Shown here one piece after another: positions 20,105 to 48,759 of a stretch of 64,000 nt of DNA. The notes beneath the pieces are model-generated. The model searched no databases, had not been told where the DNA came from, and saw nothing but the letters and a program-made list of their open reading frames with translations. Each line of letters begins with the position of its first letter. The stretch's first letter is position 1. Made by a program: the position numbers and the translations under genes. Source of the stretch: Rebecca billardiae RCC1528 (lineage: Eukaryota; Protista; Haptophyta); the NCBI GenBank assembly GCA_965240325.2, contig OZ251244.1:62001-126000 (forward strand), in the 5' to 3' direction.

Positions 20105-22425
20105 CTACTCCAGCTCGCCCAGCTCGGGCAGCGCGCCCAGCGCCTGCTTCTGGTAGCCGAACTTTGCGCTCAGCTCATCCACGAGCGGCAGCGCCACAAC
20201 CTCGCCGCGCTCGCCGCACTCGGCGCACGGCCCCGCCTGCCGCCCGCCCGACGAGCCGGCGGCGCACTCGCCGCAGAGCACGTGCGTGCAGCTGGTGCGC
20301 CCGACGCTCGAGCGGAACGGGCGCATGCACGAGAGGCACGTCAGCGCCGCGTCTACCGCCTCGGACGCGTTGAGCACCTGCGCGCGCGCGCGCGGCCCGT
20401 GCGCGGTCGAGCGGGCGCGGCGCGGCGCGTGAGCGGAGGGAGCGGCGGCGGCGGCGGCGGCGCGGCGGCGGCGCGCGCGAGGGCGCGCGCGCGCCTTGGC
20501 GAGCGCCGTCTTGAACTCGACCTCGCGCGCGAGCAGCCGCGCCAGCCGCCCCTGGAACTCGCCCTCGCGCGCCTGCAGCGCGGCCGCGCCGCCCTCGTGT
20601 CCCTCCAGCCGCTGCGCCAGCCGGCGCGCCTCCGCCTGCGCCTCGCGCAGCGCGGCCGCGCCGATGGAATGCTCGCGCCGCAGCCGCGCCGCCTCGGCCT
20701 CCGCCTCGTCGCGCGCGGCGGAGGCGTGCGCGGCGCGCGCCTCGAGCTCACGCACCGCCGCGCCGCCCGCCACCGCCTCCGCCGCCGCCTCGCGCCGCGC
20801 CGCCTCGAGCGCCGCCTCGGCGGCGGCGGCGCGCGCCGCCGCCTCGTCTCGCGCGGCGCCGAGCGCGGCCGCGGCCGCCTGGGCCGCCGCCGCCTCGTCC
20901 GCCGCGGCGCGCGCGCGCGCCTCGGCGGCGGCGCGCGCCGCCGCCGCCTCGTCCGCCTCGGAGCGCACGCCCGACAGCGCGCGCTCCACCTCCGCCGCGT
21001 TCGCGCGCGCCGCCTCCGCCTCGCCAGCCAGCCTCTCCGCCTCCGAGCCGCGCGCCGCCGCCTCGGCCGCGCGCGCGGCCGCGGCCGCCTGCTCGGCGCG
21101 CAGCGCCTCGCGTGCGGCGCCGAGCTCGGCGGCGAGGCGCGCGGACTCGTCGGCGGTGGCGGCGAGGCGCGCGGACGCGTCGGAGCGCGCCGACTCCGCC
21201 GCGCCCGCCGCGAGCGCGCGCTCCGCCTCCGCGCGGTCCGCGGCCGCGCGCGCCTCCGCCGCGTCCGCCGCGCGCTGCGCCGCATCCTGCCGCGCGCGGC
21301 CGAGCTGCGCGTTCAGCGAGCCAATCAGAGCGTGCGCCTCGGCCGCGGCGGCGCGCGCGCCGTCGGCGTCGCCGCGCGCCGAGGCGGTCGCCTCCTCCGC
21401 CGCGGCGAGCCGCTCGCGCAGCGTCGACGCGTCGCCCGCCGCGCCCTCGCGCGCGGCCGCCGCGTCGGCGCGCGCCGCGGCCGCGTCCGCGGCCGCCGCA
21501 TCGGCCGCCGCGGCCGCCGCCGCGCGCGCGCGCTCGGCCGCGTCGGCGGCGGCGCGCGCGTCCGCGGCTTCGCGCTGCGCCGCGTCGCGCGCCGCCTCCG
21601 CCGCCCTCGCCCCCGCCTGCGCCGCCTTCTCCCGCTCGCGCGTCGCGTCGAGCAGCGCGTCCGCCTGCCCCTTGGCGTGCGCCAGCGCCTTCAGCTCCGC
21701 ACGCAGCCGCTCGGCGGCGCCCTCCGCCTCGGCCGCGCGCGACGCGGCCTGTCCCGACGACGAGTGCGCCGAGGCCTCGGCGGCGGCGGCGCGCTGGCTG
21801 AGCGCGGACACCTCCTGCTCGAGCGCGTGCACGCGCTTCACCAGCTCGCCCTTCTCGCGCACCACCGCCTGCGCGCGCGCACCGCGCACCGCGCACCGCA
21901 GCCACAGCCGCAGCCGCAGCCGCAGCCGCAGCCGCAGCCGATGATCAGCGCGCGGCGCGCGGCGCACGCACGGAGCGCGGCGCGGCGCGCGGGCGGGGCG
22001 GGGCGCGCACCGCGTGCTCGCCCTTCAGCCGCTGCAGGTCCTGCCGCTCGCGCGCCGAGAGCTGCGAGAGCTGCTCAAAGTTGCGCTGCACGGTCGCCAC
22101 CGCCTCGGCGCGCTCCTGCAGCTCCGTGCGCTGCGCGTCGAGCCGCAGCTGCGGAGGGCGCGGGCGGACGCGCGGCCGCGCGGACGCGTGAGCGCGCGAC
22201 GCGCCCACCCAGCGGTGCGCCCGTGCGCGCGCGCACCTGCAGCGTCTGGATGAGCTGCTTGTCGTCCTGCGAGAGGGCGGCCATCTTGCTCAGCCGGTCG
22301 CCCACCGGCACGGCGGCGGAGGAGAGGCCGGCGGAGAGCGCGGCGGCGTGCATGTCGCTCACGCTGTTCTCGCGCGAGGCGCGCAGCGAGCGCGCGCCGC
22401 GCAGCCCGGCGCCCGCGCTCGTCAT
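20105..22425 (-). CDS. Long coiled-coil protein with C-terminal RING finger (multi-exon)
   Basis: Ala/Glu/Arg heptads; LTCLSC...CTHVLCGEC...CAEC; introns near 22235, 22010 and 20495. Confidence 0.75.
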
Positions 22426-22920: not shown

Positions 22921-23850
22921 TCAGCCTCGCAGGCCGAAGATGGCCGAGCCGACGCGCACGGACGTCGAGCCCTGCCGGATCGCGCGCTCCCAGTCGCCCG
23001 ACATGCCCATCGACAGCTCGAGCTCCGCCTCCGCGCACCCGAGCGCGGCCGCCACGTCCCGCCTGGCGTGGTGCAGCGCCGCAAAGTCCGGGTTTGGAGA
23101 GTCCGGGGGCAGGTCCGGGCGGATGGCGCCGATGGTCATCAGCCCGGCGAGGCGGAGGTTGGCGCACTCCGCCGCGATCGTCCGCGCCAGCGCCGCCGCC
23201 TCCGCCGGCTCCACGCCCGACTTGGCCGCCTCCCCGCTCGTGTTGAGCTGCAGGAGCACCGACAGCCGGCCCGCGGCCGCGGCGCGCGCGCCCGAGCCGA
23301 GCGCGTCGCCCACCGCGCTGTCGAGCGCGCGCGCGACCTTTGGGCGGTCGACGGTCTCGACGCACGCGAGGTTGGGCACGCCCGCGACCAGCGCCTTGCA
23401 CTTGTTCGACTGCAGCGCGCCGATGTACCGCCACTCGATCTCGGGCGCAATCTCGGGCGCGCGCTGCTGCAGCTCCGCTGCCTTGCCGATCAGCTCCTGC
23501 GCGTAGTTCTCGCCGAAGTGGGTCTGCCCCGCGGCGTGCGCGGCGAGGACGAGGTCGAGCGGCTTCGTCTTCGACACCGCCACCAGCCGCGGCGCGCTCG
23601 GCAGCCCCAGCTCCGCCGTGAGCGCGTCGATGCGCGCGCGCGTCTCGCACACCGACTGCTGCACGTCCGCCGCGCTCGGCAGCGGCGGCGCGGCGGGCGG
23701 CGGCGGGGCCGCCGCGCTCATCGTAGCGAGCGCGCGCGGCAGTGGCCGCCCGGCGAGCAGCGGCCCGGCGGCCGGCATCCCCGCCGCGCACGCCCGAGCC
23801 GCGACGAGCGCGAGCACCGAGCGCGAGGCGAGGCCGCGCATCGTCAGCAT
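22921..23850 (-). CDS. PLPBP: YggS/PROSC pyridoxal-phosphate homeostasis protein with N-terminal targeting peptide
   Basis: LVAVSKTKP, FGENYAQEL, IGALQSNK, GLMTIG, ELSMGMSGD, GSTSVRVGSAIFG. Confidence 0.95.
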   Translation of the reverse strand: MLTMRGLASRSVLALVAARACAAGMPAAGPLLAGRPLPRALATMSAAAPPPPAAPPLPSAADVQQSVCETRARIDALTAELGLPSAPRLVAVSKTKPLDLVLAAHAAGQTHFGENYAQELIGKAAELQQRAPEIAPEIEWRYIGALQSNKCKALVAGVPNLACVETVDRPKVARALDSAVGDALGSGARAAAAGRLSVLLQLNTSGEAAKSGVEPAEAAALARTIAAECANLRLAGLMTIGAIRPDLPPDSPNPDFAALHHARRDVAAALGCAEAELELSMGMSGDWERAIRQGSTSVRVGSAIFGLRG

Positions 23851-24341
23851 CGCTCCAGACCGGATGGATTTTCCGATTTTCAGCAGCGCAGCATTTTCAA
23901 TTTCCGCCGCCGACGCACTACCGTCACGCAGCAAAGCGCCGCGGAATTCCCTTATCGTCCCCTGACGAGAAGGTTACATCCGCACACCTACTAGACGCTG
24001 ATAGTAACACCTAGTACGACGCGGAGGATAATCAGATTCGTCACTGGAGACAACGAAACATCCGAGACCGAAGGCCTCAAACCACACACACACAAATATA
24101 TATATAATTTAATGTCAAAATATATAGAACACAAAATTAAAAACCAAAATAAAATTCATGCACCATTTACGCATGCCAACGGCATCATGATCATTTTTAT
24201 TACTATCTAAATTTTATTTTGATAGTAACATTGTTATTACTAACTAGTATAATGACGTTGTTACTGCTATAGTTAGTAGCATTGGTAGCTATCTCGGTAG
24301 TGACACTGTCACTACTAAGCTAGATCTATACTTCAATCTAT

Positions 24342-25668
24342 TGTCTGAGGGAATGAAGAGCCCGAAACGACTGAGCTAAATCGGTTCGCGCGAACCGATT
24401 TAGCTCAGTCGTTTCGGGCTCTTCATTCCCTCAGACACAACCGTAAAGTCACCTGTTCGAATCCAGCGACCGACCGACGCGGGCAACTCTTGGCCTTTCA
24501 CGCGAAGCGCTTTCGACCTCGCGAGAGCCTCGCGGCTCCGGGGGGGAATGAAAAGCGAGGAGTCGGCAAAAAGACGAACGAAAGAGGGGAGCACGAAGAA
24601 GATGACCGACAAAGAAAGACGACGACCAAAAAAAAAACGAGCACGGTCCGCGACGCGCAACCTCCGGGTACAGTCGCCCGGGTGAACAACAAAGACACAA
24701 AAAGAGCCTCATCACAAAGCCACAGCAGCAAAGAAGGGCTCACCGCCCACAAAAGACGGAGTCTCTACGAAGCCAGAGAGCAGACGAGCACGCAGGGTGG
24801 AACACCTGGGAAAGACCAGGCGGGGAGAGAAAAACCTCGACAACAAATCCGTCAGAACACTGGACGGGACTACAGCCCCTCGCGGGGTGTCCCACAGGAG
24901 ACTTACGGTTATGTCTGAGGGAATGAAGAGCCCGAAACGACTGAGCTAAATCGGTTCGCGCGAACCGATTTAGCTCAGTCGTTTCGGGCTCTTCATTCCC
25001 TCAGACATGTCGAAGGGAATGAAGAGCCCGAAACGACTGAGCTAAATCGGTTCGCGCGAACCGATTTAGCTCAGTCGTTTCGGGCTCTTCATTCCCTCAG
25101 ACATAACCGTAAAGTCACCTGTTCGAATCCAGCGACCGACCGACGCGGGCAACTCTTGGCCTTTCACGCGAAGCGCTTTCGACCTCGCGAGAGCCTCGCG
25201 GCTCCGGGGGGGAATGAAAAGCGAGGAGTCGGCAAAAAGACGAACGAAAGAGGGGAGCACGAAGAAGATGACCGACAAAGAAAGACGACGACAGAAAAAA
25301 ACGAGCACGGTCCGCGACGCGCAACCTCCGGGTACAGTCGCCCGGGTGAACAACAAAGACACAAAAAGAGCCTCACAAAGCCACAGCAGCAAAGAAGGGC
25401 TCACCGCCCACAAAAGACGGAGTCTCTACGAAGCCACAGAGCAGACGAGCACGCAGGGTGGAACACCTGGGAAAGACCAGGCGGGGAGAGAAAAACCTCG
25501 ACAACAAATCCGTCAGAACACTGGACGGGACTACAGCCCCTCGCGGGGTGTCCCACAGGAGACTTACGGTTATGTCCGAGGGAATGAAGAGCCCGAAACG
25601 ACTGAGCTAAATCGGTTCGCGCGAACCGATTTAGCTCAGTCGTTTCGGGCTCTTCATTCCCTCGGACA
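24342..25668. mobile_element. Tandem dimer of a ~665-bp element with 96-bp palindromic termini, TGT...ACA ends and 5-bp TSD TCTAT
   Basis: Palindromes at 24342-24437, 24912-25007, 25008-25103 and 25573-25668; two near-identical ~470-bp A-rich cores in the same orientation; TCTAT at 24337-24341 and 25669-25673. Confidence 0.85.
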
Positions 25669-26017
25669 TCTATACTTGCTATAATACTATACTTCAATCC
25701 CGGTCAGTCATCTCAGACATTGATAGATAGATATCCGACTCGAGTCGTCTCGGCGTCTGTCATTCTCTTGAAAGTTATTCTGGCGTCCGCCGGAACAGTC
25801 ATCAGCATAGTCTAGCTGCTCTCTCTCTCTGTCTCTAGCTAAGCTGCTACTAGAATCATTATCATCGTCATCATCATCCATCATCATCATCATCATCATC
25901 ATCATCGTCGTCGTCTGAATAGTAAAGCTTGTTACAAAGTACGACTACTAAATATACTAACTTTAGCGTGTATCTGTGAAGTCCTGTCTAACTACCCGTT
26001 CGACCGCCTATGCCCTA

Positions 26018-26462
26018 TCCGGACGGGGCATCGAGCTCGAGCCAGGCCCGCATCCAGACCTGCGTGTAAAGTTGCAAAGTGTAAAGTAGGTCCGGGAGCC
26101 CAGCCGGACTTGTCCGGCCAGTCCGACCGGACGCGTGCCAGCTGCCACCGGGCCCGGCACTCTCCGGCGCCTCCGCCCGGCGCCGGCCGGTCGCCGGGGC
26201 GCCGCGGCCGAGAGGCAGTGCAAAGTTGTAAAGTGTAAATTACATCCGGGAGCCAGGCCGGACCTATCCGGACAGCCGTCCGGCCACGCACGCGTGCGGG
26301 CTGTGCCGACGCGCCGCGCCGGCCGGCTGCCGGGCGCACGAGGGCGTGTATGACAGTGTGAAAAAGTAAATCCGGGCGCCTCCGGACGGGGCATCGCGCG
26401 CCGCGCAAGCTGCTTGGCCCAGCAACCCCCCGTAAAAGTTGTAAAGTGTAAAGTAAGTCCGG
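26018..26462 (-). repeat. Inverted, degenerate copies of the ~200-bp satellite unit
   Basis: TGTAAAGTTGTAAAGTGTAAAGTA-type boxes at ~26065, ~26219, ~26432 (weaker one ~26350), with reverse-complement GC spacers of the 28.6-30.6 kb array. Confidence 0.85.
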
Positions 26463-26749
26463 GGCTTTCGCGGGTCCAATCCGGGATCCCGCAGCCCGAG
26501 CGGCGGCGCGATGTTCGCCGCCATGGTCGATGGTGTTCGCAAGCACGTTCAGAAGCCGCCCGCCCTCGACGACGCGATCTGCACGTGCGCGCGTTGGTCA
26601 GAGCACACGCGTGACGTGGGTGAGTCGGGGGACTACCCACTACGAAGCAAAGTAGAGCGTGAAGCAAGGTAGAGTGTGTTTCCGCGTGCGCGCTCGGGCA
26701 GCTCTGCTGTGACCCCTCGGCCACGTCGTGATGTGTGCGTCCGCGCGCA

Positions 26750-28030
26750 CGGCCACGCCAGCGTGGCCAGTGCGCTTCCTCTTCAACGACACCAACGAGC
26801 TCGCCCTGGCGCACAACGTTGGCAGCAGCGCCGTGACTACACGGCTGCTGGTGGTGCGCGTGTCCGGTTGGCCACACCCTCGTGACTCTGCGGCTGCGCG
26901 CAGAAGCAGCGCCACCGGCGTGCTGCTGCCTGCCGGCATGCTGGTGGCGCCCGCGCCCGCGCCGCCGCCGCCATTTTGTGACCGTCCCACAGTGCGCCCC
27001 GCTGCATGCGCCTTGTGGCGCGCGTCCGGTTGGCCACAGCCTCGTGACTCTGCGGCTCTGCGGCTGCGCGCACAAGCAGCGCCACCGGCGTGCTGCCGCT
27101 GCCGGCATGCTGATGGCGCCCGCGCCCGCGCCGCCGCCGCCATTTTGTGACCTTCCCGCGCCGTGCGCCCCGCTGCATGCGCCGTCTGGGGCGCGTCCGG
27201 CTGACCGCAGCCTCGTGACTCTGCGGCTGCGCGCGCAAGCATCGCCACTGGCGTGCTGCCGCTGCTCGCATGCTGATGGCGCCCGCGCCCGCGCCGCCGC
27301 CGCCATTTTGTGACCTTCCCGCGCGGTGCGCCCCGCTGCATGCGCCGTCTGGGGCGCGTCCAGTTAGCCACAGCCTCGTGACTCTGCGTCTCTGCGGCTG
27401 CACGCGCATCTACCGCGGCGGGCTGCGCCTGCTGTTCACGGCCAAGGCGGACGGCGAACCCCGTACATCCCCGCCGCGGTCGTTGCCACCGCCGGCGACG
27501 GCGTCGTGCGCTGCGAGTGGCTTGCGCGCCTGCCCGCGTGGCACGCCCTCCGCACCCGCACTGTGCCCGCGGCTTGGCCCACACGCGTGCACAACGAGGC
27601 GGTCGAATGGGCAGCGCGTGCGTAGACGGCACCTGCGCCGTCGGGTCAGCGCCGCCCGTGCGCCGGGCGTGCGCACCTTCCCGCCTCGCCAGCTGGCGCG
27701 CGAACCGCCCTCGCCGCGTGGCTAAACGAGCAGCTCGGCTCGCGCGGCGCGGGCGAGCCGATCAGTGCGCGCCCGGCGGCGCCGGGCGCTGGCCGCCGAT
27801 TACGCGCGTGTACGCGGGGCGCTCGCCGGGTCTACTCGCGACGTGCTCGACGGCGAGTCGATGGTGTGACTACAAGCGCAGTGAGCACTGGCGGCGGATT
27901 GTCTTCTACTTCGCCAAGCTAGACGGCATCGACCTCTGCTGCGTGGACGACGCGTGTGTCCACGCGCACGGCCGCGCAGGCGCAGCTGCCGTGCGCCTTC
28001 GTGGCTTCCTTTTGACGGTGCCGACGGGCT
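26750..28030 (+). pseudogene. Decayed archaeo-eukaryotic primase (PrimPol / NCLDV-type) with UL52-like zinc finger
   Basis: H-x-x-(frameshift)-WP at 26754; RIYRGGLRLLFTAK at ~27405 followed by frameshifted PYIP; SRWCDYKRSEH...VFYF...GIDLCCVDDAC at 27856-27957; motif I not found. Confidence 0.5.
26860..27400 (+). repeat. Tandem repeat of about 3 x 165-170 bp
   Basis: CTCGTGACTCTGCG recurs at ~26879, 27041, 27212 and 27375; CCGCCATTTTGTGACC occurs three times. Confidence 0.85.
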
Positions 28031-28599
28031 CGCCCCCTCACCACGCGTGGCCTGCGCGGCCGTGCAGCGCGGGCACGGTGGCTCGCGCGGCAAGGCGCCG
28101 GTTGCGCGCTCGCAGCAGTTTGCAGCCCTCCGGCGCGCGGCGTTTGCTGCAGCGCCGTGACCACGCGGCTGTGGGCCGCGCCACTGGTGCTGCTGGCCGC
28201 CGCGGCCATGCCGCCGCCGCCATGATACGACCTTTTCGCGCTGTGCGCCCCGCTACACACAGCATGCGTGGACGACCGCGCTGCGCCTCGCGCCAAATGG
28301 CGCCCAGCAATACGGATGCGCACTGCACACTGCGTGCAGCGGGTTGAACGGCCCTGGCTGTGGCGTGCAACGTGCGCCGTAGAGGCGTGACTCGCCAGCC
28401 CGCGGCGGGCGTAGCGCGCGCACGCACGGGCGAGCAGCACTACTGCGTGTTGCTCAGCCGCGCCCGCGCCGCGCCATCGGTAGGTGGTGGCGCCCTCGAC
28501 CGGTATCGAATCGCCCTCCCTCACCTACCTCCCTCGCCCGGGCGGGTCGATCGCGGGCGCCGGCATCGCGATCAAATCGCGTCCGGCCGCGTCGTCCCG

Positions 28600-30597
28600 C
28601 CCGGACTTACTTTACACTTTACAACTTTACAGGCCCTCTCGCGCCCGCGGCCCGGCGGCGGCGCGGCGGCCGGCGGGCCAGCATGCGTCCGGTCGGACTG
28701 GCCGGACATGTCCGGCTGGGCTCCCGGACCTACTTTACACTTTACAACTTTACACGCCGGGCTGGGTGCTGGCCTGGCTCGTGCTCGATGCCCCGTCCGG
28801 ACGTGCGCTCACGGACCTACTTTACACTTTATACAACTTTACAGGCCCTCTCGCGCCCGCGGCCGGCCGGCCGGCGGCGCGGCGGCCAGCACGCGTCCGG
28901 TCGGACTGGCCGGACATGTCCGGCTGGGCTCCCGGACCTACTTTACACTTTACAACTTTACACGCCGGGCTGGGTGCTGGCCTGGCTCGTGCTCGATGCC
29001 CCGTCCGGACGTGCGCTCCCGGACTTACTTTACACTTTACAACTTTACAGGCCCTCTCGCGCCCGCGGCCGGCGGCGCGGCGGCCAGCACGCGTCCGGTC
29101 GGACTGGCCGGACATGTCCGGCCGGGCTCCCGGACCTACTTTACACTTTACAACTTTACACGCCGGGCTGGGTGCTGGCCTGGCTCATGGTCGATGCCCC
29201 GTCCGGACGTGCGCTCCCGGACCTACTTTACACTTTACAACTTTACAGGCCCTCTCGCGCCCGCGGCCGCGGCGGCGCGACGGCCAGCATGCGTCCGGTC
29301 GGACTGGCCGGACATGTCCGGCTGGGCTCCCGGACCTACTTTACACTTTACAACTTTACACGCCGGGCTGGGTGCTGGCCTGGCTCGTGCTCGATGCCCC
29401 GTCCGGACGTGCGCTTCCGGACTTACTTTACACTTTACAACTTTACAGGCCCTCTCGCGCCCGCGGCCGGCGGCGCGGCGGCCACGGCATGCGTCCGGTC
29501 GGACTGGCCGGACATGTCCGGCTGGGCTCCCGGACCTACTTTACACTTTACAACTTTACACGCCGGGCTGGGTGCTGGCCTGGCTCGTGCTCGATGCCCC
29601 GTCCGGACGTGCGCTCCCGGACCTACTTTACACTTTACAACTTTACAGGCCCTCTCGCGCCCGCGGCCGCGGCGGCGCGACGGCCAGCATGCGTCCGGTC
29701 GGACTGGCCGGACATGTCCGGCTGGGCTCCCGGACCTACTTTACACTTTACAACTTTACACGCCGGGCTGGGTGCTGGCCTGGCTCGTGCTCGATGCCCC
29801 GTCCGGACGTGCGCTCCCGGACCTACTTTACACTTTATACAACTTTACAGGCCCTCTCGCGCCCGCGGCCGGCCGGCCGGCGGCGCGGCGGCCAGCATGC
29901 GTCCGGTCGGACTGGCCGGACATGTCCGGCTGGGCTCCCGGACCTACTTTACACTTTACAACTTTACACGCCGGGCTGGGTGCTGGCCTGGCTCGTGCTC
30001 GATGCCCCGTCCGGACGTGCGCTCCCGGACTTACTTTACACTTTACAACTTTACAGGCCCTCTCGCGCCCGCGGCCGGCGGCGCGGCGGCCAGCACGCGT
30101 CCGGTCGGACTGGCCGGACATGTCCGGCTGGTCTCCCGGACCTACTTTACACTTTACAACGTTACACGCCGGGCTGGGTGCTGGCCTGGCTCGTGCTCGA
30201 TGCCCCGTCCGGATCTGCGCTCCCGGACCTACTTTACACTTTACAACTTTACAGGCCCTCTCGCCCCCGCGGCCGGCGGCGCGGCGGCCAGCATGCGTCC
30301 GGTCGGACTGGCCGGACATGTCCGGCTGGGCTCCCGGACCTACTTTACACTTTACAACTTTACACGCCGCGGGCTGGGTGCTGGCCTGGCTCATGGTCGA
30401 TGCCCCGTCCGGACGTGCGCTCCCGGACTTACTTTACACTTTACAACTTTACAGGCCCTCTCGCGCCCGCGGCCGGCGGCGCGGCGGCCAGCATGCGTCC
30501 GGTCGGACTGGCCGGACATGTCCGGCTGGGCTCCCGGACCTACTTTACACTTTACAACTTTACACGCCGGGCTGGGTGCTGGCCTGGCTCATGGTCG
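28600..30597 (+). repeat. Tandem array of 10 units of ~198-210 bp, each with two TACTTTACACTTTACAACTTTACA boxes
   Basis: Unit starts at ~28603, 28813, 29021, 29219, 29419, 29619, 29819, 30027, 30225 and 30425. Confidence 0.95.
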
Positions 30598-31248
30598 CGC
30601 CAGCCAGATCAGTCGCGCGCGCGCGGCGGCACTGCGCGCGCGCGGGGCGCGCGTGCCTTTCCTAGAAACTTCCGCAGAGCCGCGAGAAGGTTACACTACT
30701 TTACATAGTGACAGGGCTGGACCAGGCTTACTAGTTACACATAGGAGACACGACGTTACATATAGGAGGCATAGGCTACATTTCTACTATACGGCTTTTC
30801 TGGGGGGTGTAACCTTCTCGTGACAGGACCACCACCCGGAATTCGACGCGTTAGCGCAGCGCAGATGTGCTCACTGTAGCTACAGTCACTGCGCATTTAT
30901 CAGTCAGTCTGAGTCAGTGACAGTGTGCTGACGAGGATGCCAGTGACATTGATCGCATCGTCATGATCACGTCACCGTCATCAATTCTCGCCAGAGAAAA
31001 ATTGGCAATATAATATTTGCTGTCGCCTTGTCGCCCTTGTCCGCGGCCCATTGTCGGCACTCGGCGGGGGTGTGCCGGGCCGTACTCCGTACGGGCCTGC
31101 CCGCCCGGGTGGCTGCAGACTGTGCCATCCGCCGCGCCGAAAGAGCCGCCGCCGGGAGCGCGGCGACGCTTGAGGCGCGGCGCCCGGCGGCGCCGCCGCG
31201 CCGCGAGCTGGCAGCAGCTGGCAGCAGCGGCGGCGCTGACGCGCTCGC

Positions 31249-32211
31249 TCAGCGCCGGCTCAGCTCGATGATGTGCACCGGCGCGTCGCCCACCTCCTGC
31301 ACGGCCTTCTCGGCCCAGCGGAAGCCCGCGCCCTCGAAGAACACCTTGACCGAGTTGAACTCGCCCGGGTACCGGTCCGTCATCGCGAGCAGCACGCGCG
31401 TCGGCCGCTGCGCACCCGCGGACGGCTCGGCGGGCGCGCCGCCCAGCGCGCGCAGCGCCGAGCCGAGAGAGCCCCACGCGTTGGCGTTGTACGTGAGGTC
31501 GGAGCCGACGACCCAGTCCCACCGCTCGCCCTCCTTGGCGCAGAACGCGCGCGCGCTCTCCGCGCCCCAGCCCAGCTCCGCCGTGCCCACGCTCCCGCCG
31601 CCCTGCGCCAGCCGGTTGGTCGCCAGGTTGGCGGCCGCGTTGGCCAGCAGGGCGTCGTTGCCGTCGGTCGCGACGACGCGCGCGGCGCCGAGGGAGTGCG
31701 CGACGACGGAGCACAACGCGCAGCCCGCGCCGAGCTCGAGCACGCGCGTCCCCGCGAACGCCTCGCGCCCGAGCCCGTCCATGTACGCCGAGAGCGCGAG
31801 CGCTCCGTTCCAGACCGCCGCGCCAGTGCTGCCGGCAGACACTGCGCTCTGCTGCAGGACGAGCACGCGGCCGGCGCGGGGTAGCACGCGCGCGGGGAGG
31901 CGCATGCACCGGTTGGTGAACACGTTCACCTCCGCCTCCTCCAGCAGGTCGCTCGCGCCCTGCCCGCACGTCGCCGCCGCGCCGCCGCTCGCGCGGAGCG
32001 CGTCCGCCACCGCGCGCTCGTTCGAGTTGCCAAGCATCTCGCGCGTCCAGAGGCCGTCGACGAGGGCGTCGTCCGCGGCGCGGGAGGCGGCGGGCAGGCC
32101 GCACGCGCACGCCGCGCCGGCAGCCACCGCGCGCCGCCGGCCCATCTCCGCCGGCCGCGCCACGCCCGCGGCACACAGGCCGAGCACAACCGCGGCCGTC
32201 GGCGCCACCAT
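31249..32211 (-). CDS. Methyltransferase family 16 (METTL21-like lysine methyltransferase) with N-terminal signal peptide
   Basis: TGAAVWNGALALS, RVLELGAGC, VVATDG, ELGWG, DWVVGSDLTY. Confidence 0.9.
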   Translation of the reverse strand: MVAPTAAVVLGLCAAGVARPAEMGRRRAVAAGAACACGLPAASRAADDALVDGLWTREMLGNSNERAVADALRASGGAAATCGQGASDLLEEAEVNVFTNRCMRLPARVLPRAGRVLVLQQSAVSAGSTGAAVWNGALALSAYMDGLGREAFAGTRVLELGAGCALCSVVAHSLGAARVVATDGNDALLANAAANLATNRLAQGGGSVGTAELGWGAESARAFCAKEGERWDWVVGSDLTYNANAWGSLGSALRALGGAPAEPSAGAQRPTRVLLAMTDRYPGEFNSVKVFFEGAGFRWAEKAVQEVGDAPVHIIELSRR

Positions 32212-33133: not shown

Positions 33134-34070
33134 CGACGGCGATGGCGACATCTGGCGATGGCGATGACACCGATGATCATTGATGATCATTGATGGCCCG
33201 TGTTGGATCGCGGATGCATCCGAGGTCAGACGACGTGCGCGGCACACTACGGTTCACGGCGACGACGAATAATATCGCACGTGTCGCCACACGAGTACCC
33301 CGGCGGACCAGTGGCGGACCGACCAGCGCGGCCGCCGCATCATGCGCCATGAATTTATTTCATGCCGGCCGATCTGAGTATCATCGTCGTCATCGTCAGC
33401 GATATATATATCGCGACGACATCGTCATCGTCGCGTCATCATCCGATCATCGTCGTCGTCAGCGCTAGCTACTAGCTAGCAGCAACGCGGCGCCGCATGG
33501 GGCACACAGCAGTACTAGTAGTATAAACTATAATAAATATAAGCAGGCGCCTAAAGGCGTAAAGCCGGGGCCGGGCAGTTGACATGACGTCCGCGCGCAA
33601 ATATATTCCGGTCGATCGATCGCGCCCTGCTGCGCGACTTGATGGCCGGCGACTGCGTACCAGTACGGGCAGTATGGCGTAGATATGCCGTAGATATGCC
33701 GGGCGTCGTATGCGGCTCGGCGGTACTAGCGCGCTATAGTGAGTCTAGACGCGCGACTCTAGTGGATGAGATAGTACGCGACTACTACGACATTACCGAT
33801 AACCCGCGTCGCGTCAATTACATTATTTAATCAGCAGTGGCTGCTACTGATTATCTAGCTCCGCCGCCCGTACTCAGCGAGTCGGTCAGTCGCGACGGCG
33901 TCATCGGAGACATCAGCCGGCTAGACTGTCTAGACGGTGCGGTGGAGACCACGGATCCCGATCCCCACGCGGCCCGTGAGTATTGTGGGCACCACAGCTG
34001 CCGCCGCCGACATTGAGCGGACGCCGGCGGCGCAGCCGCGCAGCGCGCTCGTGCAAGCAGCGAGCGTGTC

Positions 34071-37000
34071 TTACGACGTGCTGTTGGCGCGCTGCGCATC
34101 GCTGCTGGTGCGCAGCAGCGGCAGCAGGTCGCGCAGGTCCGAGGCGGCGACGCGCCCGCCGCCGCCCGTGGCCGGCCCGGGCCCAGGCGGCGCCACCAGG
34201 CTCTCGAGGCCTTCGGCGAGGAAGACGGTGGCGCCCACCGAGTTCGCCGCGGCTTGCTCGAGCTGCTGCACCGCGAGCAGCCTGCCGGCAGGCAGGGGCA
34301 GGGGCAGGGGCAGGGGCAGGGCGGGGGTGGGGGCGGGTCAGGGCGGGGTGAGGGGGCGCAGGGGCAGCAGCAGTAGCAGCAGCAGCGGCGGTCGACCCGG
34401 CGAGCGTCAGGGCCGCGCATGCGGCACACGCGTGCGGCGCACCTGTGCGGCGCCCTTGCTTTGAGAAGGACGTGCACCAGCCGCTCGCCCTCCTCCACCG
34501 CGGCGCGCGGCCCCTCGAGGCTGAGCGTCTGCGCGCGCCCGTCCAGCTGCACGCGCGTGCCGCCCAGCGCGCGCCGCAGCGCGTTGACGGTGCGCCCCTT
34601 CACGCCGATCAGGACGGGCACCTGGCTCGGCTGCAGCCGCAGGGAGACGCGCGCCGTGCGCGGGGGCGACGGCGCGAGGCGCGGGCTCTCCCTGCGGCTC
34701 TCGCCGCCGCCGCCGCCGCCGCTCGCGCCGCGCGCGCCGCCGCCACCGCCGCTCCCAGCGCGCGAGGACGCGGCAGAGGCGGCCGCGGTGCCGCCGCCCG
34801 GCGCGGGCGGCGGCTGCTCCGACCCGCCGGCGGCGGCGCCAGCGGCGGCGGCGGCGGCGGCGGTGGCGGGGCTCCCCGCGCGCGGCCGCGGCGGCGCGGC
34901 GGCGGTGTCCGCGGCGGCGGCGGCGGCCGCGGGCGTGTCGGGCGTCGGGTCGGTGGCGGCGGTGACGGTGGCGGACGCGCCACCGGCGCCACCGGCCGCC
35001 GCGGCCGCGGCCGCGGCCGCGGCCGCGGCCGCGGCCACCGCCGCCTGCGCGCGCGCGCCCTCGATGATGAGGACGAGCGCGGAGAGCGCACGCTCGCGCG
35101 CCGCGCCGTCCGCACCCTCGATGGACAGCGCGGGCCACGCGGCCGCGCCCCCCTGCGGGTCTGGCAGCGCATGCCCTGGCACGAGCCGACAGAGCGTCGA
35201 CAGGGTGACCGCCTGCCGCAGCGCGCCGCCGGCCTCGCCCATCAGCGCCTCGTACAGCGGAGGCGCGGCGCCCACGAGGATGCGCGCGCGCTCGCGCTCG
35301 ACGCGCGGGCTGGGCATCGGCGGGGCGGGCTGCGCGGGCGTGCCGGGCGGCTGCGCCGCGCCCGAGCCGCTGCCGCCGCCGCCGCCCGCCGCGTCGACGG
35401 CGGCGGCGCGCGGCGCGGGCGGCGCGGGCGGCGCGGGCGGCGCGGCCGGCGCGGCCGGCGCGGCCGGCGAGGGCTCGCGCTGGCCGGAGGCGGGCGCGGA
35501 CGGGCGCGGGCTTGGGCGCGGCCAGGGCGGGTGCGCTCGGCGCGGCGAGGGCCAGCGCTGCGCCGGGCGGCGCGGCGGCGAGGGCGAGCGCACGCCGCGC
35601 CGCCACGGCGGCGAGCGGGCGCGGTGCGCCGCTGGGCCGCGCGGCGGCGGCGAGGGCGAGCGCGACGAGCGCGGCCCTCGGGGCGGCGGGCCGCGGCGCG
35701 GCGGCGAGCCCGCGGCGCGGCGGCGCGGCGAGGGCGAGCCGCGCGCCGGCGAGGGCGATGGCGTGCGGCCGGCACGGGGCGGCGGGCCGCGGTACGGCGG
35801 CGGCGACGGCGAGCGGCCGCGCGGCGCCGCCCACGCGCCGCGCGCCGGCCGCGCGCGCGGCAGCGGCGGCGAGGGCGAGCGGCCGCGAGGCGGCGGCCCG
35901 CGCGGCGGGCTGCGCGGCCGCGGCGAGACCGAGCGGCTGCGCGGCGGCGAGGGCCGGTGGCCCGCCCAGTGCGGCGCGGCGCGCGGCGGGCTACGCTGTG
36001 GCTCGCGGCGGCCGCGGCCGCGGCCGCCAGGCGGCGAGTGGTACGGCCGCGGCGGCGGCGGCGGCGGCGAGCCGTCTCCGCCGCGGCCGCGGCCGCGCTC
36101 GGCGCTGGGGCCGAGCCAGCCGCGGTGCGGCGGCGGCGAGGGCGAGCGCGACGAGGCGCGGTACGGCGGCGCGCGCGCAGAGCGCGGCGGCGAGCCCGCG
36201 CCTCGGCGGTACGGCGGCTCGGCCGGCCACCGCGGGGAGCGGGAGCGCGGCCGCGGCGGCGGCGAGGGAGGCGCTCGGCTCAGCGCGTGCGACCCCGCCT
36301 CGCCGCGCACCCCGCCGCTCGGGCCCCCCGCGGCGCCGGGCGGTGCCTCGCGCTCGGCCACCACCTCCGCCTCGAGCCGCGCCACGGCGTCCGAGACGCC
36401 GGACCCCGCGAGCTGCGCCGCCAGCACGCGCGCCATCGCCGCGCCCGCGCGCGCGCAGCCCGCCTCGGTCGGTGCGCGGATCTGCAGCTCGGCCGGCGCG
36501 CCGAGCGGCGTGGCCACGTGCATCGTGTGCGCATCGCACAGCCGGCGCAGCGCACGTATGTTCACGCCGCGGGCGCCGATGAGCCCACTCACAGCGGCGG
36601 GCGACACGGGCAGCTCCAGCGCCCACCCGAGCTCGGTCAGTCTGGGCGCGGGCGTGGGCGGCGCGGGCGGCAGCGGCGCGGAGCGCGCCGCGCCGCCGCC
36701 CGCCGCGCCGCTGCCCGCGGGCGGAGCCTCGACGCGCCCGGCCGCGCCCGCGCCCGCGCCCGGCCCTGCCTGGCCGCCACCGTGCGGCGCGGCCAAATGC
36801 GCGGCGGGAGGCGCGGCGGGCGCGGGCGGCGGCGGCGGCTCGGCGCGTGGCGGCGGCGGCGGCGCTGCCGGCAGCGGCGAGCGCGGATGGGTGTGGGTGT
36901 GCGGTGCGGCGCCGCGCGCGCCGTCGTCCGCGCCAGCCGCCACCGCCACGGCCGCCGCTGCGCGCGGCTGCTGCTGCTGCGGCGGCGGCGGCGGCAGCTG

Positions 37001-38726
37001 CTGCTGCGCCTGCTGCGCCTGCTGCGCCTGCTGCGCCTGCTGCGCCTGCTGCGCCTGCTGCGCCTGCTGCGCCTGCTGCGCCTGCTGCGCCTGCTGCGCC
37101 TGCTGCGCCTGCTGCGCCTGCTGCGCCTGCCCCCACGCCGCCTCCGCCCGCAGTGGCTCAAAGACCTCGTGCCACCGCCAGCCGTGGCCGTCCACCGCGC
37201 ACTGCGCGCACAGCCGCAGCGCCAGCCCCGCCGCGTCTGGGGGCGCGCGAGGGGAGAGAGAGGGGCGGGGCATCGACAGCGTGCTCAGCGCGCGCGCCAC
37301 GCCGCCACGCCCCAGCCGCGCGCCACCGGCGCCCCCGGCGCGCCGCGCGCACCCACAAGCCCCGTGCCATCATACGCTCGGAAGAGGCGGCGCGCCGGCG
37401 GCGGCGGGAGGGAGGACTCAGAGGCGGCGCGCGCGCACGAGGCGCAGACGCCGCGCGCCCAGCGCACCGCGCCGTCCCCGTGCGGCTGCTGCAGCTGCAG
37501 CTGCGCGCTCGTCGCCGCCTCCTCCGACAGCAGCCCCTGCGCCCTGTGCGCGCCAAGGGGCGGGGCCGGGCGCGCGCGGCAGCGGGCGGGCGTGCGTGCG
37601 TGCGCGTGGGCGCGTGGGCGCGGGGCGGCCCGGCGCGCACGCCGCGCCGCGAGCGCGCGCCGCGCGGCATGGCAGCCCCCGCGGCGCAGCCGGCGGCGCA
37701 GCGTGCGCTGCCCCGCCGCGCACGCACCGCATGTCCTGCAGCAGGTTGGCCAGCACGCGCCGCTCGCCTTCGTGCGGCCGCGCCCACTCGAGCAGCAGCA
37801 CGAGCGTGAGCGCGTGCATGCGCAGCGCCTCGCCCCAGGAGGAGGCCTGGTCGTACGGCGGCGGCTCGCCGCGCTGGCGCAGGCGCAGCTCGATCTGCGG
37901 GCGAGGCGCGGCGGCGGCGACAGCGGGGCGGCGGCACGGCGGACGGCCGGGGGCGGCGCGGGCGGCGCGGTCGGCGCGGCGCGCGGCGCGCGCGCCCCAC
38001 CGCCAGGCGACGCCGCCGGCGCGCGCGCGCGCGCACCAACGCCGCCTGCCGCATCACGCTCAGCAGGTTGAGCCGGCTGCGCGCCTCCCTCTCTTCCACG
38101 TAGAGCGCCGCGTACTCGTACTGCGCGGACGTGGGCTCCAGCGCGTGCAGCGCGCGCACCACGACCTCGGAGACGGTGAGCGTGCTCAGGTAAGAGTCCA
38201 GCGCGAGCAGGCGGCGCAGGTCCACGCCCCACTCGGCCAGCGAGTACGGCGCGCCGCCGGCCGGGGGCGCGGCGCTCGGCGGCAGTGGAGTGGGCGAGGG
38301 CGGCATCGCCGGCCGCGGCGGCGCGACCGGCAGCCGCGGCTCCGCGCCCGCCTCCTCCCCGCGCGGCTGCACGCACGCCTCGCCGCTACCGAGGCCGCGC
38401 GGCGACACGGGCGGCGGCGTGAGCGCGTTGCCGTCCGCGTCGAAGGCGGGCAGCGCGGCGTCGTGGTGCCACTGCTGCGCCAGGCGCCACTGCGCGGCGG
38501 CGCGCGCGGCCTCGGCCGACGGGTCGAGCGCGTGCGGCCCCGCTGAGCCGCGCGCGCCGTCGGCGCCGCGCGCGTACTTGTGCGCGCCGCCGCCCTCGCC
38601 CCCGTCGCCGTCGGCAGGCGCGGGCCGTTTGGCCGCGGCGGCCGCGGCGGCCGCGGCGGCGCAGCGCGGGTCGGCGCGGACACTCGCGTGCGCGGCGCGC
38701 TGCGCTGCGCCCGGCTCGGCCGCCAT
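34071..38726 (-). CDS. KH-domain RNA-binding protein with RS/RP-rich region (multi-exon)
   Basis: Two KH GxxG motifs (LIGARGVNIRAL; LIGVKGRTVNAL), RSPSPP repeats and a QQA repeat; exon structure is approximate. Confidence 0.75.
37001..37130 (-). repeat. Coding 9-bp minisatellite (CAGGCGCAG)n encoding QAQ repeats
   Basis: About 14 exact copies of CTGCTGCGC on the + strand. Confidence 0.9.
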
Positions 38727-47228: not shown

Positions 47229-48759
47229 CTCGACGGGCGACTCGGCCTGCACCTTCGCCAGCAGGTCGAGCCGCGCGCGCTCGGCCGCCTCCACCTCGTC
47301 CGCCTCCGCCGCCGCCTTGCGCTGCACCTCCGCCTCCTCCTTGCGGAAGCGCTCCAGCAGCCCCTCCGCGTCGGCCATGCTGAGGCCCAGCGCCTGCGCC
47401 TCGGCGGCCGGGACGCTCGCGCTGAGCAGGTCGGCCGACGACTTGAGCACGGCCTCCTTGAAGGTCTTCTCGAGCATCATGCGCTGCGGGCGGGGGAGTG
47501 GGGCGGCGGGCGGCGGCGCGGCCGTGTGCGGGCGCGGGCGCGCGTGAGAGGGCGAGAGGGCGCGCGCGGGTCGCACGGACGCGTGCGCGGGCGTTCCTTA
47601 GCGCGCCCGAGGGCGAGGCTGCGGCCGTGCGCGCGTGCACACACGCACGCACACACCCAACACACGCGCACACGCACGCACGCGCGTGCCACACGGGCCA
47701 CACGGGCCGCACGCCCGTTCCACCCGTTCGCCCAACACGGCTGCGCCCCCCCGCGCGCACAGCCGCGCGCACACCTGCAGCGAGTCGACGTACTCGGCGC
47801 CGTACGGCAGGCGGCCCCGCAGCGAGGCCACGGACGCGGGGTTGCCCACCGCGCGCTCGGCGATGAAGACGAGCTTGCCGAGCACGGAGGGCCTGTCTGC
47901 GAGGTGCTCCTCCGCCGCCGCCTCGAACGCCGCGGGCACCGCCGCGTCGGGCACCCCGAACGCGCGCTGCGCCAGCCGCACCGCGCGGATGGCCGCGCCG
48001 CCCGCAGGCCTGTCGGTGGCGAGCTGCGCAATGTAGCGCGAGAAGAGGCGCGGCGTGTACGGGCCGGGGCCGAGCTGGCCCTTGAACGAGCGCACGGTCG
48101 CCTCAAGCTCCGTGCTGCGGGGAGGGGCGGCGCGCGCGAGAGAGAGAGGCGGCGGGCGGCGTCAACGGGGCGCGGGGCGGCTCGCGAAAACAGCGCGTGC
48201 GCGGCGCGCGCCCGGCGCCGAGGGCCGGCAGGGGCGGCCGTCGGTGCGGCGTGGCGCACCTGCTCTCGCCGTGGTAGACCATCGTCGCGGCGCACGCGTC
48301 AATCAGCTCGCGCTGCCGCCCGCGGAACAGCCGCTGCGCCTGCCAGCCCGCGGCCGAGAGCGCGGCGGCGATCGTGATGCCGACCATCCCGCCCTTGGCC
48401 TTGGAGAACCAGCCGGACTGGAGGACGGCGTCGGAGGAGCCGCCGGTGGAGACGCGGGAGCGGCGCATCTGCGTGCGCAGCTGCTGCCGCGACATCCCGC
48501 CCATCTGCTGCTGCCGCAGCTGCGCCTCCGCCTGCAGCTGCTGCGGAGACTTTGAGACGTAGTTGCCCTGCGGCACGCGCAGCTCGCGCTGGTCGCGCCC
48601 GCCGCCGCCGCCGCCGCCGCCGAGGGAGGACATGCGCGGGCGGGCGGGCGGGCGGACGAGCGGCCGCGACGAGCCGAGCCGCGCGAGCGGCCGCGACGCC
48701 GCCGCGGGCGACGCCGCCGCCGCGAGCAGCGCCAGCACGGTGCAGCACGTCGCGCGCAT
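46791..48759 (-). CDS. Plastid-type protein with C-terminal rubredoxin domain (3 exons)
   Basis: Signal peptide MRATCCTVLALLAAAA; YECGECGYTLF...FKCPQCGAPKSAF; introns near 48258-48113 and 47774-47486. Confidence 0.8.

Follow-up and report, generated by a model that had tools for sequence, protein, structure and literature searches.

An inverted-repeat, transposon-like element with palindromic ends, present as an exact head-to-tail dimer in an AT-rich intergenic patch

What kind of sequence carries one and the same long palindrome at both of its ends, and how does it come to lie twice, end to end, at a single site? Both questions are raised by an insertion at positions 24342-25668 of a 64,000-nucleotide (nt) stretch of contig OZ251244.1 (the whole stretch is called the window here). 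The insertion is a head-to-tail dimer of two monomers (666 and 661 nt), each composed of a core between two copies of a 96-nt palindrome, P. The element is of a known kind, transposon-like and with inverted repeats, and its unusual part is the perfect palindromic ends together with an exact dimer inside one likely target duplication. Our preferred reading, to which we give a probability of about 0.5, is a non-autonomous inverted-repeat element with self-palindromic ends, which an integrase-like DDE enzyme inserted in the form of a joined-ends dimer.

Anatomy of the dimer

The monomers are 98.2% identical, differing by seven substitutions and two indels (2 and 3 nt), and both have the order P-core-P with their cores in the same orientation (Table 1). 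At the monomer junction (CA|TG at 25007/25008), P2 and P3 are contiguous, with 0 nt between them. The inverted symmetry between the ends of a monomer goes on for 19 nt on the inner side of each P, giving inverted ends of ~115 nt at 97% identity with one indel. The direct repeat between the ends is exactly P and stops there. As far as symmetry can decide, the ends behave as terminal inverted repeats of ~115 nt and not as long terminal repeats (LTRs).

The outer ends are TG...CA, and TCTAT lies directly outside both of them. At the local composition, a 5-nt flank match has a chance of ~0.0014 per boundary, and in the rebuilt patch 3 of 678 adjacent 5-mer pairs match in the same way. When the insert and one TCTAT are removed, a locally regular AT-rich site is left. 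The flanks hold short local repeats, including the TCTAT motif. Since the target is locally repetitive, the TCTAT pair is likely, but not certain, to be a target duplication.

These observations agree with the initial annotation of this DNA, which had proposed the layout TCTAT-[P-core-P][P-core-P]-TCTAT, the exact abutment of the monomers, the extension of inverted symmetry into the core ends and a single 5-bp duplication around the whole dimer (with the reservation just made for the last). Its view of the locus as an insertion is supported by the foreign composition, the sharp TG...CA ends, the 5-nt flank repeat and the AT-rich target. It had also described P as a 96-bp palindrome with no loop, which is exact for P1, P2 and P4 and not for P3.

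P1 and P2 have the same sequence and are self-complementary over the full 96 nt, with no loop. P4 is perfect as well, and the two positions at which it departs from P1 mirror each other. In P3, the left arm alone is altered, at the neighboring positions 5 and 6. Wherever the four copies differ, it is at positions 5-6 or at the mirrors of these. A match to P was found in 0 of 100 shuffles, and the DNA hairpin energy of P is -54 to -61 kcal/mol, with z-scores from -15 to -19. There are no other loop-less palindromes with arms longer than 20 nt within the window. Chance is excluded as the source of P.

Inside an arm of P, no word of 6 nt or more is repeated. The 5-nt word CTGAG occurs twice in an arm (24342-24389), 26 nt apart and in similar contexts, and the two might be paired protein-binding sites. 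Models of archaeal C/D-box small RNAs align weakly to the arm, with 16 bits against a threshold of 50, through box-like words.

The core differs from its surroundings in composition. It has 57% GC (plus strand: A 33%, C 28%, G 29%, T 9.7%), compared with 27-40% in the flanks and ~72% in the genome. The plus strand is purine-rich and has no run of four T, and its AT skew (+0.55) exceeds that of every other stretch of the window in which A+T is appreciable. No sequence similar to the core was found elsewhere in the window by blastn. In composition, the core is foreign to flanks and genome alike.

This composition bears on another explanation: that the locus is an immobile one-off, in which errors of replication, such as fold-back priming or template switching, and a subsequent tandem duplication took place in an intergenic region that is unstable, AT-rich and filled with repeats. 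It would agree with the single known locus, with a neighborhood that is an island of repeats with a foldback-like array adjoining, and with the short local repeats in the flanks, TCTAT among them. However, local errors do not account well for a core foreign to flanks and genome and lacking a match in the rest of the window, nor for the same 96-nt palindrome placed four times at exactly symmetrical places. Moreover, a duplication driven by microhomology would leave TCTAT at the junction, and the junction lacks it. We regard this origin as unlikely.

The element is non-coding, because the reading frames differ between the monomers: the 2-nt indel shifts all frames of the core. Besides, every frame of P holds a stop. 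The 142-aa open reading frame (ORF) on the plus strand had no relatives in a word search, and the 115-aa ORF on the minus strand had none in a full HMMER search of 1.84 billion representatives. Exact look-ups of 20 ORF products from the element and its flanks gave no match that revealed a further copy.

At the RNA level, no Rfam family matched the element at curated thresholds. When the search was relaxed to E values up to 10, it gave no ribozyme, tRNA or 5S RNA within the element; the only alignments were to generic hairpin (microRNA-precursor) models, far below their thresholds, and weak ones to C/D-box-like and Vault models. ARAGORN found no tRNA in the element. The segments 24401-24411, in the inner arm of P1, and 24454-24464, 53 nt downstream, resemble the two internal control boxes found in tRNA-type promoters of RNA polymerase III, although ARAGORN and Rfam find no tRNA there. 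The Vault RNA model aligns in the same region (24401-24464) at a non-significant 11.8 bits (E = 4.2).

Three RNA-based identities were considered and rejected. A ribozyme-bearing element or retrozyme was set aside as no self-cleaving ribozyme family appeared at E up to 10, and a tRNA-derived element as both ARAGORN and the Rfam tRNA model were negative. A structured RNA core was dropped as well: its z-score of -2.35 against shuffles is mostly due to the inverted ends.

Table 1. Parts of the dimeric insertion and its flanking repeats, with positions in the window
Feature	Position	Strand	Description
Left TCTAT	24337..24341		Putative 5-nt target-site duplication, identical to 25669-25673
P1	24342..24437		Outer left terminus; perfect 96-nt loop-less palindrome, starts TGTC
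Core of monomer 1	24438..24911	+	474 nt, non-coding, T-poor on the plus strand
Core 1 end stretches	24438-24456 and 24894-24911		First 19 nt and last 18 nt of core 1, carrying on the terminal inverted repeat
P2	24912..25007		Right terminus of monomer 1; perfect palindrome, same as P1
P3	25008..25103		Left terminus of monomer 2, directly abuts P2; 2 unpaired stem positions
Core of monomer 2	25104..25572	+	469 nt; compared with core 1, 4 substitutions and 2 indels (2 nt, 3 nt)
P4	25573..25668		Outer right terminus; perfect palindrome, differs from P1 at positions 5 and 92
Right TCTAT	25669..25673		Putative 5-nt target-site duplication

Origin of the dimer and upkeep of the palindromes

Three routes lead to tandem elements: recombination between terminal repeats, double insertion, and insertion of a concatemer derived from circular forms (PMC5932611). 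Recombination leaves one shared repeat, and tandems of LTR elements normally share one LTR (PMC5932611). After double insertion at one target, the junction retains a copy of that target's duplication (PMC5932611). Here, the junction between P2 and P3 holds two complete ends, which rules out recombination between shared terminal repeats, and has no TCTAT, which rules out double insertion at one site. Because of these two features, a concatemer with joined ends is the most likely origin of the dimer. The junction is just as compatible with two linear copies that were end-joined before they inserted.

Known tandem dimers of transposable elements, such as the dimers of the Drosophila P and hobo elements and concatemers derived from circular forms, are alike in being head-to-tail and made of complete elements (PMC5932611). 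Dimers from double insertion differ from ours in keeping the target duplication in the junction (PMC5932611). Following our preferred reading, two units would have been joined end to end before or during insertion, either as a circular joined-ends multimer or as end-joined linear copies. The outer ends of this concatemer would then have been integrated into the AT-rich intergenic patch. The 1.8% difference between the monomers may mean that the insertion is old and its units have diverged since, or that the units joined were different members of a family.

The palindromes raise a second question: how two arms of 48 nt remain complementary. P4 is changed in both arms and yet stayed perfect, which suggests mutual correction between the arms of a palindrome. 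We estimated the odds for two independent substitutions giving a complementary mirror change at ~1 in 285 (~0.004). This is a single event and too little for a mechanism. In the preferred reading, the arms may be kept alike by mutual pairing (as hairpin or cruciform, with mismatch correction), or one arm may be copied from its partner.

The initial annotation went further and proposed replication through hairpin or concatemer intermediates. The concatemer half of this proposal is supported, as the junction fits only a route of the concatemer type. For the hairpin half, the mirrored pair of changes in P4 is the one observation that speaks for it.

A more radical version would be a hitherto undescribed group of algal mobile DNA with the palindromic ends as its functional part, in which the ends fold into 48-bp hairpins during copying, each palindrome is regenerated from one arm, and an integrase-like enzyme inserts joined-ends multimers. 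Such a group would combine replication through hairpins with integration of the DDE type. Regeneration from one arm would explain the mirrored change in P4. We consider the existence of such a group doubtful.

Self-complementary ends are also known from small linear genomes. In parvovirus-type terminal repeats, the same self-complementary sequence is found at both ends with a short non-palindromic inverted stretch beside it, and our element shares this arrangement. It could be a remnant of a small linear replicon that was copied via terminal hairpins (by a parvovirus-like rolling-hairpin mechanism, or with hairpin telomeres resolved at the center of P), and whose concatemer was captured by the chromosome. 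The geometry of identical self-complementary termini plus a short inverted stretch is as generally expected of such a replicon. The mirrored change that keeps P4 perfect, the head-to-tail dimer with complete termini and the strong strand asymmetry of the core would also suit it.

However, such copying predicts head-to-head and tail-to-tail units with one palindrome between them, whereas the dimer has cores in direct orientation and two palindromes at its junction. The 5-nt flank repeat and the TG...CA ends point to integration by a staggered cut instead. There is no Rep, nickase, resolvase or polymerase gene in the window, and nothing similar was found among viral contigs, phages and plasmids. 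The minus strand is not depleted in C, contrary to what deamination of single strands would lead one to expect. Compared with parvovirus-type repeats, the element differs further in having no genes and in its algal host, and no sequence relative was found. Altogether, we think that a captured replicon is quite improbable.

Affinities of the element

At the level of classification, we read the locus as a non-autonomous DNA element of ~665 nt resembling the miniature transposable elements with inverted repeats known as MITEs. Its terminal inverted repeats would be ~115 nt long, with the outer 96 nt of each forming the perfect palindrome. In line with the MITE class, the element is shorter than ~800 nt and non-coding. 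The class is also marked by a target duplication of fixed length next to its inverted repeats and by multiple dispersed copies; here, ~115-nt inverted repeats at 97% identity and one 5-nt flank repeat are seen in a single insertion, and no other copy was found in the window, the fetched loci or the public collections. An enzyme supplied in trans would cut the target with a stagger of 5 nt and join the TG...CA ends to it.

Typically, 5-nt duplications in combination with TG...CA ends point to the retroviral-integrase-like DDE group. This signature is found with Ginger2/Tdd-type transposases, the integrases of LTR elements and those of Polintons or virophages. We infer by elimination, from the length of the duplication and the end dinucleotides, that the enzyme was of this class. 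Insertion by an integrase in trans had already been put forward in the initial annotation, and it stands as such an inference: the window has no integrase gene, and at the outer ends the Ginger pattern TGTNR is present only as TGT.

One close comparison is with Ginger2/Tdd elements, in which the inverted repeats measure 50-180 nt, the duplication is 4 nt long (5 nt in TDD-4/5), the ends read TGTNR and the targets are AT-rich (RTATAY) (PMC2836005). The element shares with them a terminal inverted repeat in that length range, TGT...ACA ends, a putative 5-nt duplication as in TDD-4/5 and an AT-rich target. The rebuilt site around TCTAT matches the 6-nt target preference of Ginger2/Tdd at 5 of 6 positions, in this single insertion. 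The element differs in its wholly self-complementary termini, in its exact end-to-end dimer and in that no transposase-bearing copy is known, whereas the transposase that autonomous Ginger2/Tdd copies encode is an integrase-like DDE enzyme and has an H2C2 zinc finger. Thus, the element would work like Ginger2/Tdd, and we do not file it as a member because only the TGT of the end pattern matches.

Several points weigh against the preferred reading. First, the fifth base of the outer ends breaks the TGTNR pattern of Ginger and Gypsy: it is a purine in the family pattern and a pyrimidine here (TGTCT on the left and TGTCC on the right, read inward), and only the inner end P3 fits (TGTCG). Second, the repetitive target makes the 5-nt flank match weaker evidence than usual. 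Third, one locus is known: the window and the collections searched yielded neither another copy nor a solo P, an empty allele or an autonomous partner. Fourth, literature searches, which did not cover curated repeat libraries, found no family with wholly palindromic termini, so that "undescribed" is provisional and an enzyme that handles self-complementary ends has no precedent. Finally, the Logan short-read contig that carries the neighboring YggS gene ends at 23978, 364 nt before the element, so the palindromes have no confirmation from a second assembly.

The search for further copies used DNA pattern queries taken from the center and the arm of P and from the inner repeat. The exact patterns of P and of the inner repeat had no match in viral contigs, metagenome contigs or prokaryote genomes, and blastn of the monomer against phages and plasmids gave none either. 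Neither the window nor the ~50 kb of fetched loci, 35 kb of them from Diacronema lutheri, contained a further copy of the element. Regarding genes, no integrase, transposase, reverse transcriptase, Rep or polymerase was detected in the window (30 large ORFs checked), and a partner gene inside it was discarded after negative domain searches of its ORFs. Thus, two of the leads that the initial annotation had suggested to follow, other copies of P or the core and an element-linked integrase, reverse transcriptase, Rep or polymerase ORF, came out negative in the window, the fetched loci and the public collections for the former, and in the window for the latter.

Exact copies of four window proteins are present on Logan short-read contigs from runs ERR14847148 and ERR14847151, so the same organism has been sequenced independently. 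Given that this independent contig leaves the region uncovered, one may ask whether the locus is an artefact of the long-read assembly, caused by fold-back or chimeric reads or by two alleles placed in tandem. Fold-back artefacts invert whole reads, and would not set a 96-nt palindrome at the ends of an element four times. Both monomers and the four copies of P carry distinct differences, and the boundaries of the element coincide with the flanking repeat. For these reasons, we consider an artefact very improbable.

A retroelement is a further alternative. The element would then be a terminal-repeat retrotransposon in miniature (TRIM), perhaps one whose LTR includes a polymerase III promoter: the LTR would be the 96-nt P, the element would be copied through RNA and inserted by the integrase of an LTR element, and two cDNAs would have been joined before integration. 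TRIM and TRIMp3 elements, such as Helenus and Cassandra, are likewise small and non-coding; their terminal direct repeat measures ~100 nt, their ends are TG...CA and their duplication is 5 nt long, as in TRIMs mobilised by Copia (PMC10886601). The definition by two direct LTRs with TG...CA ends and a 4-6-nt duplication suits the 96-nt P and its 5-nt flank repeat. The purine-rich and very T-poor plus strand of the core, with no run of four T, would also favor it, as would the segments at 24401-24411 and 24454-24464 that resemble control boxes.

However, the signals for reverse transcription were not detected. Both purines and pyrimidines occur in the 18 nt before the right P, which are not a polypurine tract. 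Nor is there an evident primer-binding site. The stretch that follows the left P mirrors the one before the right P and is not a separate signal. The tRNA- or 5S-like LTR of TRIMp3 was not detected either, as ARAGORN finds no tRNA and Rfam neither type at E up to 10. Inverted symmetry that passes 19 nt beyond P, with no direct symmetry there, is unexpected for LTRs, and the junction has two repeats where LTR tandems normally share one (PMC5932611). We found no precedent for a wholly self-complementary LTR. We rank the inverted-repeat reading above TRIM because the inverted symmetry passes P while the direct symmetry stops, and because no primer-binding site or polypurine tract is apparent; a TRIM is an unlikely identity for this element.

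Other families were compared as well. Palindromic MITEs and foldback elements are also non-coding, form hairpins, have a short flanking duplication and lie near genes. Nevertheless, in those the whole element or its sub-repeat arms form one fold-back, whereas here each end is its own loop-less palindrome. Foldback elements have long arms of tandem sub-repeats and little or no middle; our element has no sub-repeats and a 470-nt asymmetric core. Helitrons and Helentrons were rejected: they make no duplication and have asymmetric ends with just a short hairpin at the 3' end, which is contradicted by the flanking 5-nt repeat and the symmetric inverted ends of 115 nt.

Two other ways of parsing the monomer were set aside. 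One takes the core as a separate TA-flanked element nested between two copies of P, although this TA is merely part of the unbroken inverted symmetry. The other takes a P-core-P unit as inserted at the center of a P.

Genomic setting and significance

The window has 62-85% GC in 2-kb bins, and the element sits in its largest and most AT-rich patch (23951-26100), where GC falls to a minimum of 27%. The other intergenic dips in the window are 200-450 nt long and have 40-51% GC. The patch, at whose left edge (23978) the Logan contig ends, contains an (ATC)n microsatellite (25855-25921) and lies upstream of a YggS-type pyridoxal phosphate-homeostasis gene (22921-23841, minus strand). The nearest named relative of its protein is that of Diacronema lutheri, with 58% identity; on this basis, the host is a Pavlovales-like haptophyte.

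The remaining window proteins are ordinary eukaryotic ones: F-box/RCC1, an ADH/EamA reading frame and a GH10 fragment, as well as AAA, KH, Kelch, lysine-methyltransferase and fucosyltransferase-like proteins. An ORF on the minus strand (1253-2812) contains seven EsV-1-7 cysteine-rich repeats (Pfam PF19114, E = 1e-74). A virus of brown algae and the genomes of stramenopiles and haptophytes were the first in which the EsV-1-7 family was noted.

On the other side of the patch from the YggS gene, next to the element, lies a foldback-like repeat block (26018-30700). Its first part (26018-26500) has ~2.5 degenerate units of 200 nt and is the inverted complement (89-93%) of a tandem array at 28600-30700, which has a period of 200, at least 6.9 copies and 94% matches. 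Between these two arms, a 163-nt tandem repeat is present in 3.1 copies (26886-27405). The ORFs of the block show no codon-position bias in GC.

In Diacronema lutheri, the YggS gene has a Methyltransf_16 gene of the same orientation 3.8 kb upstream, and three genes separate the two. In the window, the distance to the upstream Methyltransf_16 gene (31249-32211) is 7.4 kb, and only repeats, the AT-rich patch and the element lie between it and the YggS gene. We set this possible synteny aside, as the two methyltransferases match at only 43% over 108 aa.

Elsewhere in the window, two regions (20400-22200 and 34000-38500) reach 83-85% GC and are crowded with GC-rich tandem repeats of degenerate sequence. 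Long ORFs overlap there on the two strands, and one frame has a KH domain. ARAGORN also predicted an 84-nt tRNA-Pro on the minus strand (47908-47991), which is very GC-rich, unlike a real tRNA gene, and probably a false positive.

What would such an element mean? Long perfect palindromes are unstable in chromosomes, and our literature searches found no report of them as transposon ends. If this were a single-locus oddity, it would matter little. If a family of this kind exists, it would imply an integrase-type enzyme able to handle fully self-complementary ends, and it would offer a natural case for how the arms of a palindrome stay identical. It would also add a type of mobile element to haptophyte genomes, whose repeats are poorly described. 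Finally, the exact end-to-end dimer is a clean natural example of the insertion of a concatemer, which has been proposed as a first step in the path from transposon to satellite DNA.

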